Source: Hemiscyllium ocellatum (lineage: Eukaryota). Taken from it: 64,000 nucleotides of DNA. Position 1 is the first letter of the stretch. Each line of letters begins with the position of its first letter. The notes below the pieces were generated by a model that saw only the letters and a list, made by a program, of their open reading frames with translations, was not told the DNA's origin and searched no databases. Positions 7,822-49,022 of this stretch are shown here, one piece after another. The DNA lies in NCBI RefSeq assembly GCF_020745735.1, contig NC_083418.1:25809776-25873775 (forward strand), read 5' to 3'. The position numbers and the translations under genes are program-made.

Positions 7822-8812
7822 AGAAAGAATACCCAAGCGGGGATGGGACATGAATGCAGATTAGAGAATCAAATTCTTAGAAATGAATGCAAGTAATAAA
7901 TATATATATATATGGTATTGCTAATCTAATTACGAATTGAAATAGTTACGTTCGGAATTAAAATGTGTGAAGGATTCAGTAATGTTGATAGTTGTATTTT
8001 AGCATTCTACTGAAAATTGATAAGTGCTGGAAAATTGGAGTGTGACCAATACAATATCAAATTCTCAAAAAGACAGAGCTAACTTGCAAAATGACATGCC
8101 AATTACTCAACATAAATATAAAATAATAAAATTGCAGATGCTGGAGATCTGAAACAAAAACAAAAATTGCTGTTGAAACTCAACAAATCTGGGAGCATCT
8201 GTAGGAAGAAAGCAGAGTTGAAGTTTTGAGTCCAGTACTTTACCCTCTCGTAAAAAGAGAGTCACTGGACTCAAAATGCTAGGGAGTCACTCCAGCAAGT
8301 TCAGTTTTAGTCCACATCAATAGTCAGAGAAATTATGGATGCTTAAACTTGAAGATGAAATTCTTCAATTTCAAACTGGACAATATGATTGGAAACAGCC
8401 ACATATCTCCGAATGGAAACTCAATATTCGATAGATCTAGAGGAGTTGTTTGGAAGGTACAGATACAAGAGAAATGCTGTGGATGTGATGTACATGAACA
8501 AAAGATATTTCAGGGGATTACAGGAAAGCATTTTAGAATTAATTAAGAATTTGTAAGAAGATTAGCAACCTGGATTAAAGCAAAAGAAACATCCTGTGGA
8601 TGCTAAAAATATGAAGTGAAAACAGAAAATGTTGAAAATACTCAGTAGATCGACAGAATTGATGTTCTGAGTCAGACATGTCTCTTCAAGAGAAATTAGA
8701 TCCAACTCAAAACGTTAACGCTTTTAATCAAGTTGAGAGAGAAACAAGCTTGTTAGAAGTGAGGAAGGGGAAAGTAGCCATCAGAAGCAGTTCCCAAGTG
8801 GTTGTTATTAAT

Positions 8813-9055
8813 AATTTGGAGATGCCAGTGTTGGACTGGGGTGTACAAAGTTAAAAAAGAAAAATCACACAACATCAGGTTATAGACCACCAGGTTTAAT
8901 TGGAAGCACTGGCTTTCAGATTAAATTTGAAGATGAAATTTCAAAACTGGACAATATGAATAAATCAACCACCTGATGAAGGAGCAGTGATCCGATTAGT
9001 TAGTGCTTCCAATTCAACCTGCTGGACTATAACCTGGTGTTGTGTGAATTTTGAC
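8813..9055. mobile_element. PLE-derived fold-back element, family B
   Basis: Inverted arms; 12-bp TSD GTTG(T/C)TATTAAT at 8801-8812 and 9056-9067; the loop holds foreign sequence. Confidence 0.8.
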
Positions 9056-13838: not shown

Positions 13839-14190
13839 TTCCGCCTGGGAACCCTCCAACCACAAGGGATGAACTCATTTCTCCAGTTTCCTCATTTCCC
13901 CTCCCCCCACCTTGTCCCAACCCTCAAACTCCGCACCGCCTTCCTAACCTGCAATCTTCTTCCTGACCTCTCCGCCCCCACCCCACTCCGGCCTATCACC
14001 CTCACCTTGACCTCCTTCCACCTATCACATCTCCATCGCCCCTCCCCCAAGTCCCTCCTCCCTACCTTTTATCTTAGCCTGCTGGACACACTTTCCTCAT
14101 TCCTGATGAAGGGCTTATGCCCGAAATGTCGAATTTCCTATTCCTTGGATGCTGCCTGACCTGCTGCGCTTTTCCAGCAACACATTTTCA
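13839..14190 (+). mobile_element. PLE family A 3' fragment inserted into a CR1 LINE
   Basis: End of the endonuclease ORF plus pseudo-LTR and HHR; flanked by duplicated CCTCAAAGATC of the host LINE. Confidence 0.8.
14099..14134 (+). ncRNA. Minimal hammerhead ribozyme motif (family A)
   Basis: ATTC CTGATGA a GGGC-ttat-GCCC GAAA tg TC^ GAAT. Stem I ATTC/GAAT is perfect; there is one CpG-decay change in the stem III loop. Confidence 0.7.
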
Positions 14191-16649
14191 GACCTCAAAG
14201 ATCAGCAAGGTAGCCTTTGTATAGAATGGCAGTAAATGAGGAAGATACTAAATGAGCATTTTATATCAGTGTTTACTGTGGAGAAGGACATGGAAGTTAT
14301 AGAATGTAGGGAAATAGGTGGCGATATCTTGAAAAATGCCCATATTACAGAGGAGAAAGTGCTGAATGTCTTGAAACACAAAAGTGGATAAACCCCCAGG
14401 ACCTGATCAGGTGTACCCTAGAACTCTGGGAAGCTAGGGAGGTATTTGCTGGGCCCTTTGCAGAGATATTTGTGTCATTGATAATTACAGGTGAGGTTCC
14501 GAAAGACTGGAGGTTGGCTAATTATGGATAGTCAACATGGCTTGGAAAATCATGTCTCACAAACTTGATTGAGTTTTTTGAAGAAGTAACAAAGAGGATT
14601 GATGAGGGCAGAGTAGTGGATGTGATCTATATGACCTTCTGTAAGGCATCGGACATGGCTCCCCATGGGAGACCAGTGAGCAAGGTTAGATCTCATGGAA
14701 TACAGGGAGAACTTGCCATTTGGATACAGAACTGGCTCAAAGGTAGAAGACAAAGGGTGTTGGTGGAGGGTTGCTTTTCAGACTGGAGGCCTGAGACCTG
14801 TGGTGTGCCACAAGGATTGGTGCTAGGTCCACTACTTTTCATCATTTACATAAATGATTTGGATGTGAACATAGCAGGCATGGTTAGTAAGTTTGCAGAT
14901 AACACCAAAATTGGAGGTGTAGTGGACAGCGAAGAGGGTTACCTCAGAGTCTTGATCCAATGGGCCAATGGGCTGAGGAGTGGCAGATGGAGTTTAATTT
15001 AGATAAATGTGAGGTGCTGCATTTTTGGAAAGCAAATCTTAGCAGGATTTATACATTTAATGGTAAGGTCCTAGGGAGTGTTGCTGAACAAAGAAACCTT
15101 GAAGTGCAGGTTCATTGAAAGTAGTCGAAGGTAGATAGGATAGTGAAGGCAGCGTTTTCCTTCACTGGTCAGATTATTGAGTATAGGAGGTGGGAGGTCA
15201 TGTTGTGGCTGTACAGGACATTGGTTAGGCCACTTTTGGAATATTGCATGCAGTTCTGGTCTCCTTCCTATTGGGAAGATGTTGTGAAACTTGAAAGGGT
15301 TCAGAAAAGATTTACAAGGATGTTGCCAGGGTTGGAGGATTAGAGCTATAGGAGAGGCTGAAACGTTTGGGGTTAGTTTCCCTAGAACATCAGAGGCTAA
15401 GGAGTGACCTCAGACGTTTATAAAATCATGAGCAGCATGTATAGGAAAAATAGACTTGTTTCCCTGGGGTGTACGAGTCCAGAGCTAGAGGACATAGGTT
15501 TAAGGTTAGAGGGGAAAGATATAAAAAAGGGACCCAAGTGACAACATTTTTACACAATAAAAGGTGGTACGTGTATGGAATGAGCTGCCAGAGGAAGTGG
15601 TGGAGGCTGGTACAATTACAACATTTAAAAGGCATCTGGATGTGTATATGAATAGGAAAGGTTGAGAGGAAAATGGGCCAAATGCTGACAAATGGGATTA
15701 AATTAGGTTAGGATGTCTGGTTGGCATGCACAAGTTGGACCAAAGGGTCTGTTTCCATGTTGTACATCTCTATGACTTTATGTATACCAACACAACGTAG
15801 ATCTGTAAGTCATTTAGCATTGGCCTATAAATGGATCTCTTCAGAAAATAATTTGCTGCTTTTTTGTTTGTCTGTTGGACTAGTGGATAAAGTACAAAAT
15901 TCACTGGTTGATGCAATGTACAGGGACTGAATATTTCCCCAGGTTTGTAAAATTACTGGGAAGCTCGGAATCACGAGGGCACTGTGAACAGTAGACAATT
16001 TATCCAGTTCTTTCCAGAAACATGCATGAACAATGGTCACTTAAAAATGTTTTGTTAAACAAAAAACAAAGGCTGATTTGACATGGATTTGAGAAATCTA
16101 GCATCACCTAAAACATCCATCCTCTCATGTTTATGCTACAAAATGCATTTGTCTGAAGATGAATAACAATTCTTTGATGCATTTTCTCTTGGATTATAGA
16201 AAATGGACTTGACAGAATAAATGGCAAGAGCTAGGTCAGAATTGCTGAGTCACCAAAGTCAAACTGAAAATGTCAAAGCATCTACAATTAGTTTCTAAAA
16301 GTCAGCACACACTGAACCAGGCCATGCAACACATGGGAACGGGAGGGAGGGAGGAATTAAATATTTTGAAAGCAATCAATCAAACCTAGAGAAAGCAAGT
16401 GATTGCATGATGCCTGCTAGTTTCATGGCATGCCATTACTCAGGTTGGCAGTTTACTTGTAGTCACATCTGTAATGCTGCATGGATGCATTATGATGCCC
16501 ATAGGATAAACAGCCAAGTACAACCATAGAGATCCCCTCACTACAAAACTAAATGAGCAAATGAAATGATTACATTTCAGTGCCTGTTTAATCCCTCTTC
16601 CCTAAGCTGATAGTACTATGGTCCACTACATTAGAAATAGCAACTATAT

Positions 16650-16939: not shown

Positions 16940-18226
16940 AGGAGATGAGGTTTAGGGAGAAAATTCCACATCCAGGCCTTGACATGCAGAAGCGTAACCA
17001 CTAACTGTGGCTGAAAGATGGTTGAAAGAAGAAGTCCAGAATTCAATAATCGCAAGTACCAATGAACTGGAATTGGATGGTACAGTTGTTTTGAAAATCA
17101 GAATGAGAAAAAGTTTACTCAATCTGATCAGAGGTTTACTCTGAAAAATGCCCCAATGCACTTTGCATGCCCTGTGCTCTGTGAGCCTTTCCCTTTTTAC
17201 AGAGCAGTTATTCAACAACAATCCATTTCTAGCAGAAAGTGAGGATTGCAGATGCTGGAGATCAGAGTTGAGGGTATGGTGTTGGAAAAGCACAGTAGTT
17301 CAGGAAACATCCGTGGAGCAGGAAGATCAACGTTGAGTATAAGCCCTTCATCAGGAATCAGGCTTGTGGGCTGGGAGCCTGAAATAAATTGGGTGGGGTG
17401 GGGGGAGGGGGGGGGGGGGTTGCGGGGTGATGGATGTGGTAAGAGGATGGGGGAGGAAGAGGTAAGGTAGCTGAGAATGCGATAGATAGATGACGGTGGG
17501 GAAGATGATGATGGGTGGGAGAGGAGGGCGGAGCAGATAGGTGGGAAAGGTGCCGAGTTGGAGGCTTGGGACTGGGATAATGTGGGGGAGGGGAAATGAG
17601 GAAACTGGAACCTTGCAATCACACAGGATCAATGTGGATTTCATTTCCCCTCCCCGCAAATTACCCCAATACCATGCCTCCAACTAGGCATGCCCGCCTG
17701 ACCCGTCTATCCCCTTCCCCATCTATCCCATCCACCCTCCTCTCCAACCTATCACCTTCTCCACCGCCTTCATCTACCTTCTTCCCAGCCAGTCCCCCTC
17801 CTATTTATCTCTCAGCTCCACCCCACCCCCGTCCCCTGTGCCCCACAAGTCTCATTTCTGATGTAGGGCTTATGCCCGAAACATTGTTTCTCCTGTTCCT
17901 CGGATGCTGCCTGATCTGCTGTGCTTTTCCAGTACCACACTCTCAACAACAACCCTTTTCTATATTGCAGCTCAATTCTCCAAAACATCCAAAAGGAGCT
18001 CCACAAAAAAAAGTGATTATCAAACACATTTTGAGACTGAATCACACAATGAAATTCAGACAAGTGAGTCAAAGAGTAGGTTGTAAACTGCCTCTTGAAG
18101 ACATGGTGAGAGTTGTGAAGGAGATGAGGTTTAGGGAGAAAATTCCACATCCAGGCCTTGACATGCAGAAGCGTAACCACTAACTGTGGCTGAAAGATGG
18201 TTGAAAGAAGAAGTCCAGAATTCAAT
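16940..18226 (+). repeat. 108-bp exact direct duplication (16940-17047 = 18119-18226)
   Basis: Base-by-base identity by eye; copies are offset by 1179 bp. Confidence 0.9.
17232..17942. mobile_element. PLE family A inverted pseudo-LTR pair
   Basis: Two oppositely oriented pseudo-LTRs; 20-bp TSD with 2 mismatches at 17212-17231 and 17943-17962. Confidence 0.8.
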
Positions 18227-22357: not shown

Positions 22358-22502
22358 CTGAAAATGTGTTGCTGGAAAAGCGCAGCAGGTCAGGCAGCAT
22401 CCAAGGAGCAGGAGAATCGACGTTGCCTGACCTGCTGCGCTTTTCCAATAACACATTTTCAGCTCTGATCACCAGCATCTGCAGTCCTCACTTTCTCCTA
22501 GC
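22358..22502. mobile_element. PLE-derived fold-back element, family A (short)
   Basis: Hairpin plus tail; perfect 15-bp TSD AGACCTGCCTCCTTG at 22343-22357 and 22503-22517. Confidence 0.85.
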
Positions 22503-25361: not shown

Positions 25362-25738
25362 CTGAAAATATGTTTTCAGATTTCTCCAGTTTCCTCATTT
25401 CCCCTCCCCCCACCTTGTCTCAGTCCCAACCCTCGAACTCAGCACCACCTTCCTAACATGCAATCTTCTTCCTGACCTCTCCGCCCCCACCACCCCCTCC
25501 GGCATATCACCCTCACCTTAACCTCCTTCCACCTATCGCATTTCCAATGCTCCTCCCCCAAGTCCCTCCTCCCTACCTTTTATCTTAGCCTGCTTGGCAC
25601 ACCTTCCACATTCCTGAAGAAGGGCTCATGCCCGAAACGTCAATTCACCTGCTCCTTGGATGCTGCCTGACTTGCTGTGCTTTTCCAGCAACACATTTTC
25701 AGCTCTGATCTCCAGCATCTGCAGTCCTCACTTTCTCC
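25362..25738 (+). mobile_element. PLE family A pseudo-LTR insertion
   Basis: Pseudo-LTR, HHR and tail; flanked by duplicated TTTCTGGATTAACA. Confidence 0.8.
25610..25645 (+). ncRNA. Minimal hammerhead ribozyme motif (family A)
   Basis: CTGAAGA a GGGC-tcat-GCCC GAAA cg TC: core intact, first stem I pair broken. Confidence 0.55.
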
Positions 25739-26718
25739 TTTCTGGATTAACAGTCAAATAATACCATTAGGCCATCTCCTCTCACACATTCAGGGGTATT
25801 ATAAAGCAGAATTAATATCTAAACGGGGGAGTCGGATGTTTATCATCTTTAAGTGTGTCTGGACAAAGCAACTGAACAGAAAAACAAAATGGCAAGGAAC
25901 GAGCAGATTTTTCTTGTGTGGATCTAACAAGCCAAGTGAACTCCTTGTGTGCTGTGACTATTCTATGGCCAAAAGTATGGGTAGACTTTAAGGTTGAAAG
26001 GGGAAAGTGGGGAGGAGGTATATTCCAGAGTTTAGGGTGCAGGAGTCCAAGATAGGAACAGATTAAAACCAGAAGTGGTCAAGAGCTTAAAATTAATGTA
26101 CAGATAGCTCCCAAAGCAATCAATAAAGTTATTGCGAAGTCCTGATTTCATCTGTGCAGGTCATAGCATACTTTTGTCCAACCCGTTTAATGCGAAACTT
26201 AACATCTAATACATGGTTCATTTTTAAATTGCCATTCCTTCCTTGGTCTGTCATACACACATTTCCTCCCGTGAAGGTGCTGACATTGAGAGAAGTACAG
26301 TTGCGTCCAAAAGGTTAGTTCCACAGTTCATAACATCATTCCAGCTGCTCAATGTTAATGCCAGTTGCAAAGTAAGCGATGACTCAGGTATTGCAGTTGG
26401 ACTGACAGCAAGTTAAGTGTTCAACCACCATTCCCACCACACTGACAACAACTTCCAGAAGCCACATGTGTGCAGAAGTCTAGAAGATATAAAACTATGC
26501 ATCTCCCCTGCGTGCAATCAATTAGGAATCTATGAATTCCCTCCCACCTATGTGTGCAAATAAAGTATTGGCAAACCTGCGAGTTGTAACTACCCAACAA
26601 CCATTTGAGAATACTAGATGGGACAATTCTGGAACCTTGTACATCTCCTGCCCTGGACTTTCACTATTCCTCCATTCAGTCCAGTCATTCCCTCTCTGCA
26701 CTCTGTTTTTCTCCTCAT

Positions 26719-31674: not shown

Positions 31675-32038
31675 NNNNNNNNNNNNNNNNNNNNNNNNNN
31701 NNNNNNNNNNNNNNNNNNNNNNNNNNNNNNNNNNNNNNNNNNNNNNNNNNNNNNNNNNNNNNNNNNNNNNNNNNNNNNNNNNNNNNNNNNNNNNNNNNNN
31801 NNNNNNNNNNNNNNNNNNNNNNNNNNNNNNNNNNNNNNNNNNNNNNNNNNNNNNNNNNNNNNNNNNNNNNNNNNNNNNNNNNNNNNNNNNNNNNNNNNNN
31901 NNNNNNNNNNNNNNNNNNNNNNNNNNNNNNNNNNNNNNNNNNNNNNNNNNNNNNNNNNNNNNNNNNNNNNNNNNNNNNNNNNNNNNNNNNNNNNNNNNNN
32001 NNNNNNNNNNNNNNNNNNNNNNNNNNNNNNNNNNNNNN
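31675..32038. other. Assembly gap
   Basis: 364 N bases. Confidence 1.
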
Positions 32039-32832: not shown

Positions 32833-32909
32833 CTAGTCAAAGAGACCAAAGCCCATGTCATCATCTGATTCTTCAGATTCTTCTTTCTTCTCTTCTTTCT
32901 TTTCTTCAG
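32833..32909 (-). CDS. RPLP2: 60S acidic ribosomal protein P2, exon 5 (last coding exon)
   Basis: CAG| acceptor, then (A)EEKKEEKKEESEESDDDMGFGLFD-TAG, the invariant P-protein C-terminus. Confidence 0.98.
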
Positions 32910-39457: not shown

Positions 39458-39580
39458 CTTATTCAGCCGTTCATCATCAGCTTCAATACCAACACTGTCT
39501 AAAATCTTCTTAATGTCCTTTGAAGATGGTGAGGTATTGCCACCCAATACAGCAAGGAGATAAGCTGCGACGTAACGCAT
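39458..39580 (-). CDS. RPLP2: 60S acidic ribosomal protein P2, exon 2 (start codon)
   Basis: Acceptor TTTTTTTAG|A then ATG; MRYVAAYLLAVLGGNTSPSSKDIKKILDSVGIEADDERLNK; donor |GTATTA. The four coding exons sum to 336 nt (111 aa plus stop). Confidence 0.98.
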
Positions 39581-42858: not shown

Positions 42859-43800
42859 GTACCCCAAGTGCTGGCATGCATGGGTGTTCTGCATGGAGCT
42901 AATCACAGCCAGAACCATCCTGTCACCATGCCATGAATGCATTTGTTTTAGGAAAAAACAACAAAAGAGTTTTCAGAATTACTGTGGAAATATTCAAAAT
43001 TTTGCGTTTGCCAACTTTGGGAGTTCAGTGCTCAGAAGTTCAATGTGATGTAAAAGGAAACACTAAGTTTAAACATATACATTACACTCACCAAAGTAAC
43101 AAGGTGGGAAATCAGTTCACTTCTCCATCCTCCAAGTCCATAGCACCTGGAGTATTTCCTTGTGCAGGAGTCTGATGTGAGAATTGTGAACTACTCCTGC
43201 CAGTCCAACTGTTAAACCTGAAACTATAGGTTTTCAATGGTCAGTAGCAAGTCTGACCCACATTTTTGCCTGGTATCTTAATCTAACCATGACTCCACAC
43301 GTTGTGCTGCAGAGTACAATTGATAATAAATGCCTCTAGCTTCCCTCCGGCCAAAGCCGGCATGTGCTATCAACTACAGTTGGTCTGCCTTTACAATTCA
43401 TCTGCCGCTCCACAGAAGCAATGACAAATGGTTTACTCGGGTCCCGACAAGGTTAGGTACCATGTGACCTCCTGCACGTTCACTTAAGCAGTTTATTTAC
43501 ATAAAGACACAGTATCTTAACACTAGGTGAATAGGCACTGGTAATCCATGGCATTTTCAAGTTAGACAAATTTTAAGAATCAAGCAAATTTTATCTGCAT
43601 TTTAAAAACATTTTCCTGCAGATTTTCGACAAAATTACAAACACCAAATAATAGCTTGTTTTGTAATATTGTAGCCAGTCAGCTGGATTGACAAGAAAGA
43701 ATGTTGTGAGCAATTTATTGTTTAGTGATATAATGAGATGATTCAACTTCATATTGCTCACTATGATGATGAGCTCAATTAAAATGAAAATTAAAAAGAA

Positions 43801-44433
43801 AAAGGCCTACTTCTTTAAACTTCAATTCAAGTTTACAGAAACTAAAAGGCAAGTGTTCTGCCATTTCACCAGTATAGTTTCAACAGGCAGTTAGCTGCTG
43901 CATTAAATACGGTAGTAGTGTGGGATATCAAATGATAGCTTATCACTACAGAGGGCAAATAGTCCATAAACCTACTCAAGTAATGATGAACAGGTGCCGG
44001 TGGTGGACAAAGTTTAAAAATCAGAGTCTAGATTAGAGTGGTGCTGGAAAAACACAACAGGTCAGGCAGCATCCAAGGAGCAGGAAAATCAATGTTTCGG
44101 CAAAAGCCCTTCATCAGGAATGCCTGAAACGTTGATTTTCCTGCTTCTCGGATGCTGCCTGACCTGCTGTGCTTTTCCAGCACCACTCTAATCTAGACTC
44201 TGATTTTTAAACTTTGTCCACCCAAGTCCAACACTGGCACCTGTTCATCATTACTTGAGTAGGTTTATGGACTATTTGCCCTCGGTAGTGATAAGCTATC
44301 ATTTGATATCCCACACTACTACTGTATTTAATGCAGCAGCTAACTGCCTGTTGAAACTATACTGGTGAAATGGCAGAACACTTGCCTTTTAGTTTCTGTA
44401 AACTTGAACTGAAGTTTAAAGAAGTAGGCCTTT
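43801..44433. repeat. 633-bp near-perfect palindrome
   Basis: Arm 43801-44102 is the reverse complement of 44121-44433 (about 9 substitutions, one 10-nt and one 1-nt indel by eye), with an 18-nt spacer. Confidence 0.95.
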
Positions 44434-44718
44434 CCAGCTTTTCCAGCACCACTCTAATCTAGACTCTGATCTCCAGCATTTGCAGTGCTCACTTTTGCAA
44501 AAGTTAAAAATCACAACACCAAGTTACAGTCCGAATGGTTTATTTGGAAGTACTAGCTTTTGGCGCACTGCTCATTTGGCAGGTAGCTGTGAAGCAGGAT
44601 TATGAATTTGGTGTTTTATGATCCTGCTTCACAGCTCCCTGATGAAGGAGCAGTGCTCCGAAAGTTAATACTTCCAAATAAATCTGTTGGAGTATAAGCT
44701 GGTGTTGTGATTTTTAAT
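43984..44718. mobile_element. Family B fold-back element hosting a nested family A insertion
   Basis: Outer TSD CCTAC(T/G)CAAGTAA at 43971-43983 and 44719-44731; inner duplication AAAGTT(T)AAAAATCA at 44009-44023 and 44500-44513. Confidence 0.8.
44636..44670 (+). ncRNA. Minimal hammerhead ribozyme motif (family B)
   Basis: CTGATGA a GGAGC-agt-GCTCC GAAA gt TA: core and stem II intact, stem I degenerate. A sister copy lies on the minus strand at 216-246. Confidence 0.55.
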
Positions 44719-45095
44719 CCTACGCAAGTAAGTTCTAGCCTTATTTTTAAAGGAAGAAAACTTGTTAGAAAGGATATATAATTGATGGATCAATATGACG
44801 ACGGGTGTTCAGGAAGTTAAAAAAATTGACTTGTTTACAGTCTAGGTTGACAACATCTCACAAAAAGACATGTCTCAAGGTAGACTCATTGAACTTGAAA
44901 CTAACTATTTCTCTCTCTCTCTTTCAGATGTTGCCAGACTTGCTGAGTTTCTCCAGCACACTTACACAACCAATTGCAAGTGTTGCATATGACATCTGGA
45001 GAGAAGGGCAGAGACATCATCTTTGAGCTATGGTTGCTGGTCTTGAAAACATGGCTTCATTTTCAAATATCAAAATGACTTGTCCATTTAGATAT

Positions 45096-46699: not shown

Positions 46700-47520
46700 G
46701 TTTAATCTACTCTTACAGCTGGTCATCCCTAACCCTGTCGCCAGTGCCGAACCCAAAGTGCACACGCAACCTACATAGCAATTCCAGAACGATCCGGTTT
46801 GGGTCTTTTGCTCGACGTACACAAATATAAAAGAAACAGATTTGCAAGAACTCTAGCTTGTTCAGGCGCCATTGGCTTAGGCAGTGGCGCGAGAACTTGT
46901 GTATCCTGGTCTGAAGGCTTGGTGCCTTACCATCTGTCAATCTGAGAGCGCTCAGGTGCAGTTCAAGGTAGAGAGAGTCCATTGCCTCAGACAGGGAAGC
47001 CCGATAATGAGAGGGTCGATGCTGGGGAGTCAGTGAAACCTTCAGTTCATCCACCCTGACCGGTGGAGAGAGCTCGGGAACAAAGGTGTGGAACGTTTGT
47101 AATGTCTTAACATTCTAGCGATGGAACGTCGGAAAGTTGCAACATTCTATCAACGGAACTTTGCAACATAGTAACTTCCATTTGTTGGGACACTGCCGTG
47201 AGGCGGGAAGAAATGAGTTCGCCGGCGCTTTCCAATAACTTGGTGAGACAGCAGTATAACCACATCCCGCAATCACCCGGACACTGCCATAACCCATCCG
47301 GAGCCGTTTCATTTTTGGAAGGCAAAACAAAACTTTCGACAAACCGCCCAGTTGCCACTGAGTCTTCCGCTCGATGTGAGTTTGTAAGCTGCTGTGCTGA
47401 CAAGTCATGGGGGGAAAAAATCTCCACTTTCTTTTCCTCTTCGCCACTTCTTGATCCGCAACTTTTAAATAGGCCAAACGCTTCGGTCTGTTTTCAAAGG
47501 AGTTCGCGATTGAAGTGTGC
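46700..47520 (+). promoter_or_regulatory. Probable PIDD1 promoter and non-coding first exon
   Basis: Repeat-free, CpG-enriched region divergent from RPLP2. E2F-like TGGCGCGAGAA (46885-46895) and GGCGGGAA (47202-47209), ATTGG at 46871-46875, and a candidate donor GAT|GTGAGT at 47376-47381. Assignment to PIDD1 is inferred from position. Confidence 0.55.
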
Positions 47521-49022
47521 ATTTTAAAGCAATTGTAGTAATCTGTGCTAAAGTGTGCATAACTATTTCAGTGGAGTGTGAAGTATTACTGACTTCCGGA
47601 ATGAAGACATTGAGAATTCTTTTTAGGGCTATTCTCCCCTGTTTAGAGTAAAGTAAGTTTTGTGGCGTTGGGGGCAGGGAATTAAAAGAAACTGGCTTAG
47701 TGTTAACTTGCATTAATATGGCGCCTTTAATGGAAACAATTCTTTCAGCTCTATGATAAAGCACGAGGAAAACACAAGAGATTACAGGGCGAAACGAAGC
47801 TCGGTTGAGGAGATTCTTTGTGACAATGAATGAACTTCCGCTTTTGTTGTGCGTAGGGACACTTCAAATTGACTATATTAATTGTAAAGTAATTAATGTA
47901 GAAAACGTAATTAAATAGGCAATAAGGTAACCAATTTTTACACTAATTGTTGATTTCGGCACCTTAATGTTCTTGGGTATTACTGGTGAACTTTCCATCT
48001 TTGCTAGCGTTGCTACCTGCTTTAAAAACTGACCTGACCTTCCGACCAGTATTCGTGCTGTCTATTTCTTTCTCGGTAATATCACCTAACTTCGTCCTTT
48101 CTTCGATTAATCTGTTGCTGAATCCCTCTTGTTTAACGTTTTTTTTAAAGAAACTGCAAATTTTGACTAATACCATAAACACCTGACTAGACTCAAGCTT
48201 GAGTTCAGTCAACACTCTGCTGCTATATTAATGCTGCATACGTATTAATATAAAGTTGTCAAAGTCCCAAAGGGCCACATTAGAGAGAAATGACTGGTGG
48301 CAACTTCATCTGAAGGTCGCCACACTTGAAACAAGGAGTGGTTGTCAAGGCAGGACCGTGAAGGTAATCTCAGCCACCGTGATAATGTGCTGTTGGCATC
48401 ATTCTGCATCACAGCCAGCTGACCAATCCCCTTGCCTGCAGTTGATTCTAATGAGAGAACAACCTAATGCCTTAACATATATCATGTCTCATAAACGCAT
48501 TATCCCTGCTATTAATCAACACATCATGCAAGTTGTATCTGAACTTTGTTGTGGACTCACTTTTATGATCTTTCCTCTCCCTATTTCCAAAATTTATTCC
48601 AGTCCCACAGGCCTCAACGATATCTGCACTCTGGTTTTGGCCTCTTGAATCTCCTGATTTTAATTATTCCACCAGTTTTCAGCTGCCAGATCCTAAGCTC
48701 TGGAATCTCTTCCTTTAAAGCTCCTTGCCTTTCTCCTTTAAGATGTTTCATAAAACCTACCTCTGTCAAGGAGCTTTAGGCCGTCTGCCCTAATATCACT
48801 TGTGTAGCTTGGGGTCAATGTTTGGTTTATAAAGTACCTGAGAAGTGCCTTGGTGTGTTTTATTACACAAACAGCACCATTATAAATACAAGTGGCTTCT
48901 GAAGTGGCAAATAGGAGCTTTGTTTTTACAAGTCATTGAAAAATTACCCTGATATTGAAGCAGTTCCTCAACGTTGCCCTGATGTACAAGCTCTTGATGA
49001 TGTGCTCAAGTTCTAATGTAAG

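Follow-up and report, generated by a model that had tools for sequence, protein, structure and literature searches.

The window, i.e., the whole stretch of 64 kb that was analysed and to which all positions refer, carries the RPLP2 gene on its minus strand, with the start-codon exon near 39580 and the last coding exon near 32856. CpG islands are found at 40.5–41.5 kb, 47–48 kb, and 58.5–59 kb, the first of which is probably the RPLP2 promoter; the CpG-rich stretch at 47000–48000 (observed/expected 0.8–0.9) lies between RPLP2 and the PIDD1 side. The window also contains a stretch of N at 31675–32038. The structure studied here, a long palindrome, is located in CpG-poor DNA, 2.5–3 kb from the nearest CpG islands and ~14 kb from a further CpG-rich stretch that may be the PIDD1 5′ UTR.

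The palindrome is an inverted repeat of 633 nt, with arms at 43801–44102 and 44121–44433. The repeat search returned two arm pairs, 43801–44008/44226–44433 (208 nt, 98% identity) and 44002–44098/44126–44222 (97 nt, 95%), and four further paired positions (ggca/tgcc) reduce the spacer between the arms to the 18 nt at 44103–44120. Then, the left half was globally aligned, base by base, to the reverse complement of the right half. The flank part (43801–44023 versus 44201–44433) showed four mismatches (43825, 43911, 43950, and 43999) and one 10-nt indel, while the part belonging to a repeat that we call family A (44024–44098 versus 44126–44200) showed five mismatches over 75 positions; the identity of the whole arms is ~97%, indels excluded. 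Folded as a single strand, the 633 nt form one hairpin of −350 kcal/mol, against −70 for shuffled sequences (z −58). The arms, their identity of roughly 96–97%, and an 18-nt spacer holding the complement of a hammerhead core had been described in the first-pass annotation, made from the sequence alone, and they were recovered here almost to the base. The same annotation considered cruciform extrusion or dsRNA formation plausible at this place, between the RPLP2 and PIDD1 promoters; such effects are hypothetical.

Read from left to right, the locus is a family A stub nested in the tail of a stub of a second repeat, family B. The original left arm begins with single-copy host DNA (43801–43983, + strand), recognised by its uniqueness in the window, its contig depth, and its contiguity with the outer flank in relatives. 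Its last 13 positions (43971–43983) are the left copy of the family B target-site duplication, which by direct reading matches the right copy (44719–44731) at 12/13 positions. It is followed by the family B stub tail (43984–44008, − strand), which carries a 10-nt deletion between 44001 and 44002, as seen by alignment to five other family B copies and to the right arm. The left copy of the family A target-site duplication (44009–44023) has one extra T and is otherwise equal to 44500–44513. Next come the tail-less inverted arm of family A (44024–44102, − strand), running from about unit 160 inward and bearing a decayed hammerhead core, as placed by the arm alignment and by mapping onto the natural copy 25550–25741, and the spacer, which reads as the complement of CUGAUGA and is the centroid loop of the fold.

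On the other side of the spacer, the proximal direct arm of family A (44121–44200, + strand; units 79–160 by unit mapping) mirrors the tail-less arm and lacks a tail. It leads into the inverted copy of 43801–44023 (44201–44433, − strand), identified by the repeat search and the alignments, which retains the 10 nt of family B. In addition, the T by which the left family A target-site copy is longer recurs in its mirror, 44201–44215, and is absent from the right copy. The inverted copy ends at the return junction, 44433/44434, where direct reading of the region 44431–44447 shows a cttt microhomology and a slip copy of 8–9 nt of the adjacent ttttccagc (junction feature 44431–44438, + strand). Beyond it lies a second, distal family A piece (44437–44498, + strand; units 130–185 by unit mapping), marked by a perfect 34-nt direct repeat (44171–44204 = 44437–44470, 100%) that makes up its first 34 nt; the only family A tail of the locus is on this 62-nt piece. 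The right copy of the family A target-site duplication (44500–44513) has the family B consensus state, as judged from direct reading and the family B alignment, and the body of the family B hairpin stub follows (44504–44718, + strand), with arms at 44504–44606 and 44615–44717 from the repeat search and an intact minimal hammerhead from 44639 found by descriptor match. Both duplications on which the nesting had been proposed are thus present, the outer one matching at 12/13 positions and the inner one differing by one T, and the alignment together with the tail piece 44437–44498 confirms that the insert consists of a family A hairpin, an inverted flank copy, and a second tail. The inverted copy of the flank exists as claimed and is templated by 43801–44023 (223 nt); its length had to be corrected, being 233 nt.

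Families A and B are short stubs of Penelope-like retroelements, with the insertion anatomy that is published for these elements. Penelope-like insertions comprise a pseudo-LTR, an inverted 5′-truncated copy, and a one-sided tail of 30–40 bp (PMC8557442, PMC3846280), and their palindromic junctions have been interpreted as self-primed (PMC3846280). A Penelope-like protein has been reported to cut both target strands, to extend them, and to begin reverse transcription at an internal site, which accounts for the tail (PMC11167929). Coherently, a normal insertion of family A or B in the window consists of a tail-less inverted copy beside a tail-bearing direct copy of the hammerhead-bearing 3′ unit, within one target-site duplication. 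The 3′ unit of family A is composed of a C-rich part, the hammerhead core, a conserved stem, and the terminal tail.

The Rfam hammerhead models gave no match at the locus or in the whole window, where only microRNA-like hairpin noise was returned; a published minimal descriptor was therefore used instead. Built on the features of the minimal hammerhead (PMC4209133), it requires CUGANGA, an extra base before helix II, the G10.1–C11.1 pair, GAAA, and a palindromic 15.1–16.1 tetrad. In its strict form, it gave four matches in the window and none in 200 shuffled sequences: three matches fall in copies of family A, and the fourth, from 44639, in the focal family B arm. Below E 0.01, the only Rfam match of the whole window was MIR1437 at 17528–17706, far under the gathering score; it is a hairpin artefact of the G-rich/C-rich centre of a long family A hairpin (17232–17948) and not a microRNA. 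This hairpin has its own target-site duplication of ~20 nt (17212–17232/17941–17961) and is bracketed by a perfect 108-bp direct repeat of single-copy DNA (16940–17047 and 18119–18226), for which a recent template switch, a segmental copy, and an assembly effect are all conceivable.

Autonomous Penelope-like elements encode a telomerase-like reverse transcriptase and a GIY-YIG endonuclease. A reverse-transcriptase fragment is present at 14565–14999 (+ strand; RVT_1, E 2.5e-8) and could be typed neither as Penelope-like nor as LINE. It lies ~380 bp downstream of a plus-oriented family A unit (14040–14200), where a Penelope-like ORF would sit. No GIY-YIG match was found among the window ORFs scanned, and no typed Penelope-like coding sequence was found in the window.

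Six other family A copies were compared to the focal one using the unit coordinates of the natural reference copy 25550–25741. All six are hairpins enclosed in one target-site duplication of 10–20 nt, with varying fold points; the tail-less arm starts at units 145–162 of 192, and the direct arm reaches units 179–192, always running on into the tail, which is found at one end only. In the focal copy, the end of the proximal direct arm, at unit 160, coincides exactly with the start of the tail-less arm; no tail follows, and the sequence goes on to mirror the target-site copy, the family B tail, and 183 nt of host DNA. Without 44121–44436, the insert would look like two ordinary asymmetric hairpins of the window, those at 22366 and 24319. 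This geometry supports the path expected of a + strand 3′ end that paired back on the tail-less arm and copied its own strand, and the return junction, with its cttt microhomology and slip, points to serial template switching. The reverse order of events, in which a palindrome existed first and family A inserted into its centre, was rejected: the central hairpin has neither a tail nor its own direct duplication, and such an order would not account for the distal tail piece. The first-pass annotation had attributed the palindrome to fold-back synthesis that ran past the junction into chromosomal DNA during Penelope-like integration. The geometry fits the fold-back part of this claim, the stop at unit 160 being followed by the mirror. 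The part that names integration as the agent is less firmly placed, because a later break or replication fold-back on an existing hairpin gives the same product, so that integration as the copier is something we infer.

The copied flank is not repetitive DNA on the evidence available from the window. BLAST of 43600–43983 against the 64-kb window found no second copy beyond its own inverted copy, while the same approach gave ~17 matches for family A and ~10 for family B; in the self-comparison of the whole window, only two low-copy local repeats emerged, one of them being the palindrome itself. Among the public-run contigs, the depth over 43813–43983 was at the level of single-copy flank in 4/4 runs from three shark species, against 10^5–10^7 for the family A and B parts, although contig depth is one mean per contig, inflated by repeat words, and was for this reason dropped as a test of copy number. 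The 183 bp of the arm outside the repeats are thus single-copy both in the window and in the contigs of three species, in line with the non-repeat nature assigned to them at first reading. Membership of 43801–43985 in a repeat consensus had then been named as the finding that would speak against the proposal; what was found is no other window copy and single-copy depth.

Between the three shark species, the same segment evolves slowly: at the rates measured outside it, ~10 changes would be expected in 43801–43983, and two were seen (P 0.003). A search for an RNA gene as the cause of this conservation gave no RNA family match and no unusual fold in 43801–43983. The segment may represent a conserved non-coding element, of which the palindrome holds a reversed duplicate.

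The public-run evidence consists of Logan contigs only, from organism A (likely the source species, represented by two separate studies) and from organisms B and C, which are about 4–5% diverged from the window in the outer flank. In organism A, a contig on 43300–44043 showed only two differences, 43911 G>A and 43950 A>C, which are exactly the right-arm letters, and a contig from the independent sample, on 43300–43910, showed no difference and stopped just before 43911. Both match the window with 0 differences over ~500–600 nt located outside the arm or at its edge; thus, the four substitutions and the indel within 223 nt are differences between copies, not alleles. On the polarity given by the relatives, the derived states of the left arm are those at 43911 and 43999 and its 10-nt loss, and those of the right arm are at 44409 and 44284. 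The extra 10 nt of the right arm also match five other family B copies of the window in the alignment, which indicates that the copy keeps the older state and that the original left arm lost the 10 nt later. The argument that these 10 nt speak for a real, aged event, already made at first reading, holds through this match.

The contigs also date the family A insertion. One organism C contig, placed from 43793 onward, crosses the family B tail, where the 10 nt are present, and the target-site copy, which has the extra T, and reaches 34 nt into the family A arm; hence the insertion is older than the split between A and C. In both relatives, the segment 43801–43983 continues directly into the orthologous outer flank. 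The contigs of organisms B and C stop in high-copy parts, and the right side of organism C is absent from the recovered contigs; within this set, the palindrome was not seen in either relative. Immediately beyond the palindrome, at 43788–43792, two organism C contigs end, each with 32–34 letters that are not on the window, and organism B shows a gap of 3 nt; an A-rich hotspot of indels or an insertion in organism C seems to be involved.

The reading that we tentatively prefer, at a confidence just short of even, is that the element's own reverse transcriptase copied the flank during the integration of the family A stub. The family A stub would have landed in the tail of the family B stub. During end joining, the + strand 3′ end at the left, i.e., that of the tail-less arm, would have primed on itself across the 18-nt loop and copied its own arm back to the outer end. 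Instead of switching to the other cDNA, synthesis would have continued across the target-site copy of 15 nt, the tail of family B, and then unique host DNA (183 bp), for an overrun copy of 233 nt in all. A jump at 3–4 nt of microhomology, with a slip of 8–9 nt, onto a short tail-bearing cDNA at the right end would then have closed the insertion, and separate changes, including the 10-nt loss in the left arm, would have accumulated in each arm afterwards.

A second hairpin of the window bears on this reading. In the family B hairpin at 8860–9052, 53 nt at the arm-to-arm junction (spacer 8921–8973) were copied, in direct orientation, from 578 bp upstream (source 8343–8403; score 55 versus a shuffled maximum of 33). 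Including the focal one, junction DNA templated by the host is present in 2/7 of the window hairpins with spacers of at least 25 nt, a proportion that, within one 64-kb window, leans toward integration. Copying at the time of integration is known from other retroelements: R2 snap-back junctions copy cDNA or, less often, nearby target DNA (PMC11371274), and L1 makes inverted duplications at its own target sites (PMC11702581).

Two explanations would dispose of the palindrome as a product of copying at this locus. It could be absent from the genome, arising from a fold-back chimeric long read or from a mix of haplotypes. Palindromes are a known problem for assemblers, and, among the contigs listed from the four runs, none crosses the distal junction 44433/44434 and none is placed on 44281–44382; contigs fitting both arms were placed on the left arm. 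A fold-back read, however, would not return to a family A tail, a target-site copy, and family B, as the assembled path does. Moreover, the arms differ at four sites plus 10 nt, with derived states in each arm relative to two other species. One organism A contig has the right-arm letters at 43911 and 43950, that of the independent sample stops exactly before 43911, and the absence of differences outside the arm assigns these letters to copies rather than alleles. From the order and letters of the arms, an assembly chimera thus seems very unlikely. Even more improbable is that the whole 633 bp are a single fold-back element with long terminal inverted repeats, or that 43801–43983 belongs to a repeat consensus. 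Short hairpin elements are indeed very abundant in the window, but this segment has no other window copy, has single-copy depth in three species, and continues into the orthologous outer flank in both relatives.

The explanation that competes most directly with copying at integration, and that we consider a substantial possibility, is that an ordinary family A hairpin (tail-less arm, 18-nt loop, direct arm with tail) inserted first and was folded back later. The inverted arms would have caused a break or a stalled fork near 44170, the 3′ strand would have folded back on the hairpin, and a host polymerase would have copied what remained of the left arm, followed by 223 nt of flank, before microhomology, with a short templated slip, rejoined the strand at the same position. 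The point of return (unit 130, 44437) coincides with a possible leaving point (44171), which makes the event a simple out-and-back detour. The distribution of the extra T also speaks against integration: the left target-site copy and its mirror have it, the right copy does not, and the simplest order that this allows is insertion, then T gain, then fold-back. The slip tttccagc beside its own template resembles templated end-joining inserts, and a templated slip at a junction is typical of host end-joining as well. Divergence gives a mixed signal. Fewer differences separate the flank arms (4/223) than the hairpin arms (5/75; Fisher p 0.048), and the neutral divergence between A and C outside the arm (22/425) predicts 11.5 differences (P of 4 or fewer, 0.01), in a comparison with an organism that already bears the insertion. 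On the other side, the arm DNA is slow-evolving between species, so its low divergence is no sign of youth: the flank-arm divergence is not below that between A and C at the same sites (1/152), and at the local rate it is at least as large, with the insertion common to organism C. The step in divergence within the direct arm was rejected as a dating signal because the distal original piece is equally without differences: the outer 32 nt of the original direct arm have 0 differences from the tail-less arm, and its inner part has 5/~41. Finally, two host-templated junctions among seven long-spacer hairpins in one window would be a high rate for rare later accidents. On the whole, copying at integration comes close to an even chance, later repair or replication is a serious possibility below that, and an artefact or another origin is improbable.

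If copying at integration is correct, a wider claim can be formulated, which we regard as possible but rather doubtful: that self-primed overrun during Penelope-like integration is a regular, so far undescribed source of host palindromes of hundreds of bases, which also duplicates conserved non-coding DNA in reverse. The insertion mechanism of Penelope-like elements is still poorly understood, and overrun products preserve the identity of the strand that folded back, its starting point, and the way in which both ends were joined. If such events recur, sharks and other Penelope-rich genomes would hold many long host-DNA palindromes, which are fragile and confuse assemblers. If the event was instead a later accident, millions of retroelement hairpins would be seeds of inverted duplications. 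Under both readings, the locus offers a clean and dated example, polarised by outgroups.

Among known systems, fold-back inverted duplications are seeded by short inverted repeats during break repair or replication template switching. The focal structure resembles them in being centred on a pre-existing inverted repeat, in being bounded, and in returning by microhomology; unlike them, its seed is a retroelement hairpin made at integration, and the event may not be separate from integration. A standard Penelope-like insertion (PMC8557442, PMC3846280) shares with the focal one the minimal hammerhead in the terminal unit, the inverted truncated copy beside a direct copy, the single target-site duplication, the tail at one end only, and the palindromic junction. 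The difference is that mirrored synthesis at the focal locus did not stop inside the element but covered a further 233 nt of target-site copy and host DNA, and no description of such an overrun was found in the Penelope-like element literature searched. In the snap-back 5′ junctions of R2 observed in transgene insertion experiments (PMC11371274), the 3′ end of the cDNA likewise primes DNA-templated synthesis before the 5′ junction is made. Those are fresh events in human cells, produced by a non-LTR element at rDNA, whereas the focal event took place at a Penelope-like stub of a shark and is old and probably fixed, with both the element's reverse transcriptase and a host polymerase as candidates for the copying. 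The twin priming, local inverted duplications, and foldbacks of L1 (PMC11702581) are similar in that both ends of the target break are extended, a self-annealed 3′ end gives inverted copies of the target, and the junctions carry microhomology and templated inserts. L1 is a retroelement of another class with another endonuclease, and its foldbacks are usually large and chromosome-destabilising, whereas the focal copy is a contained one of 233 nt that rejoined its own locus. The focal structure is, in these terms, a variant of the known Penelope-like anatomy combined with the snap-back and target-site inverted duplication of other retroelements.
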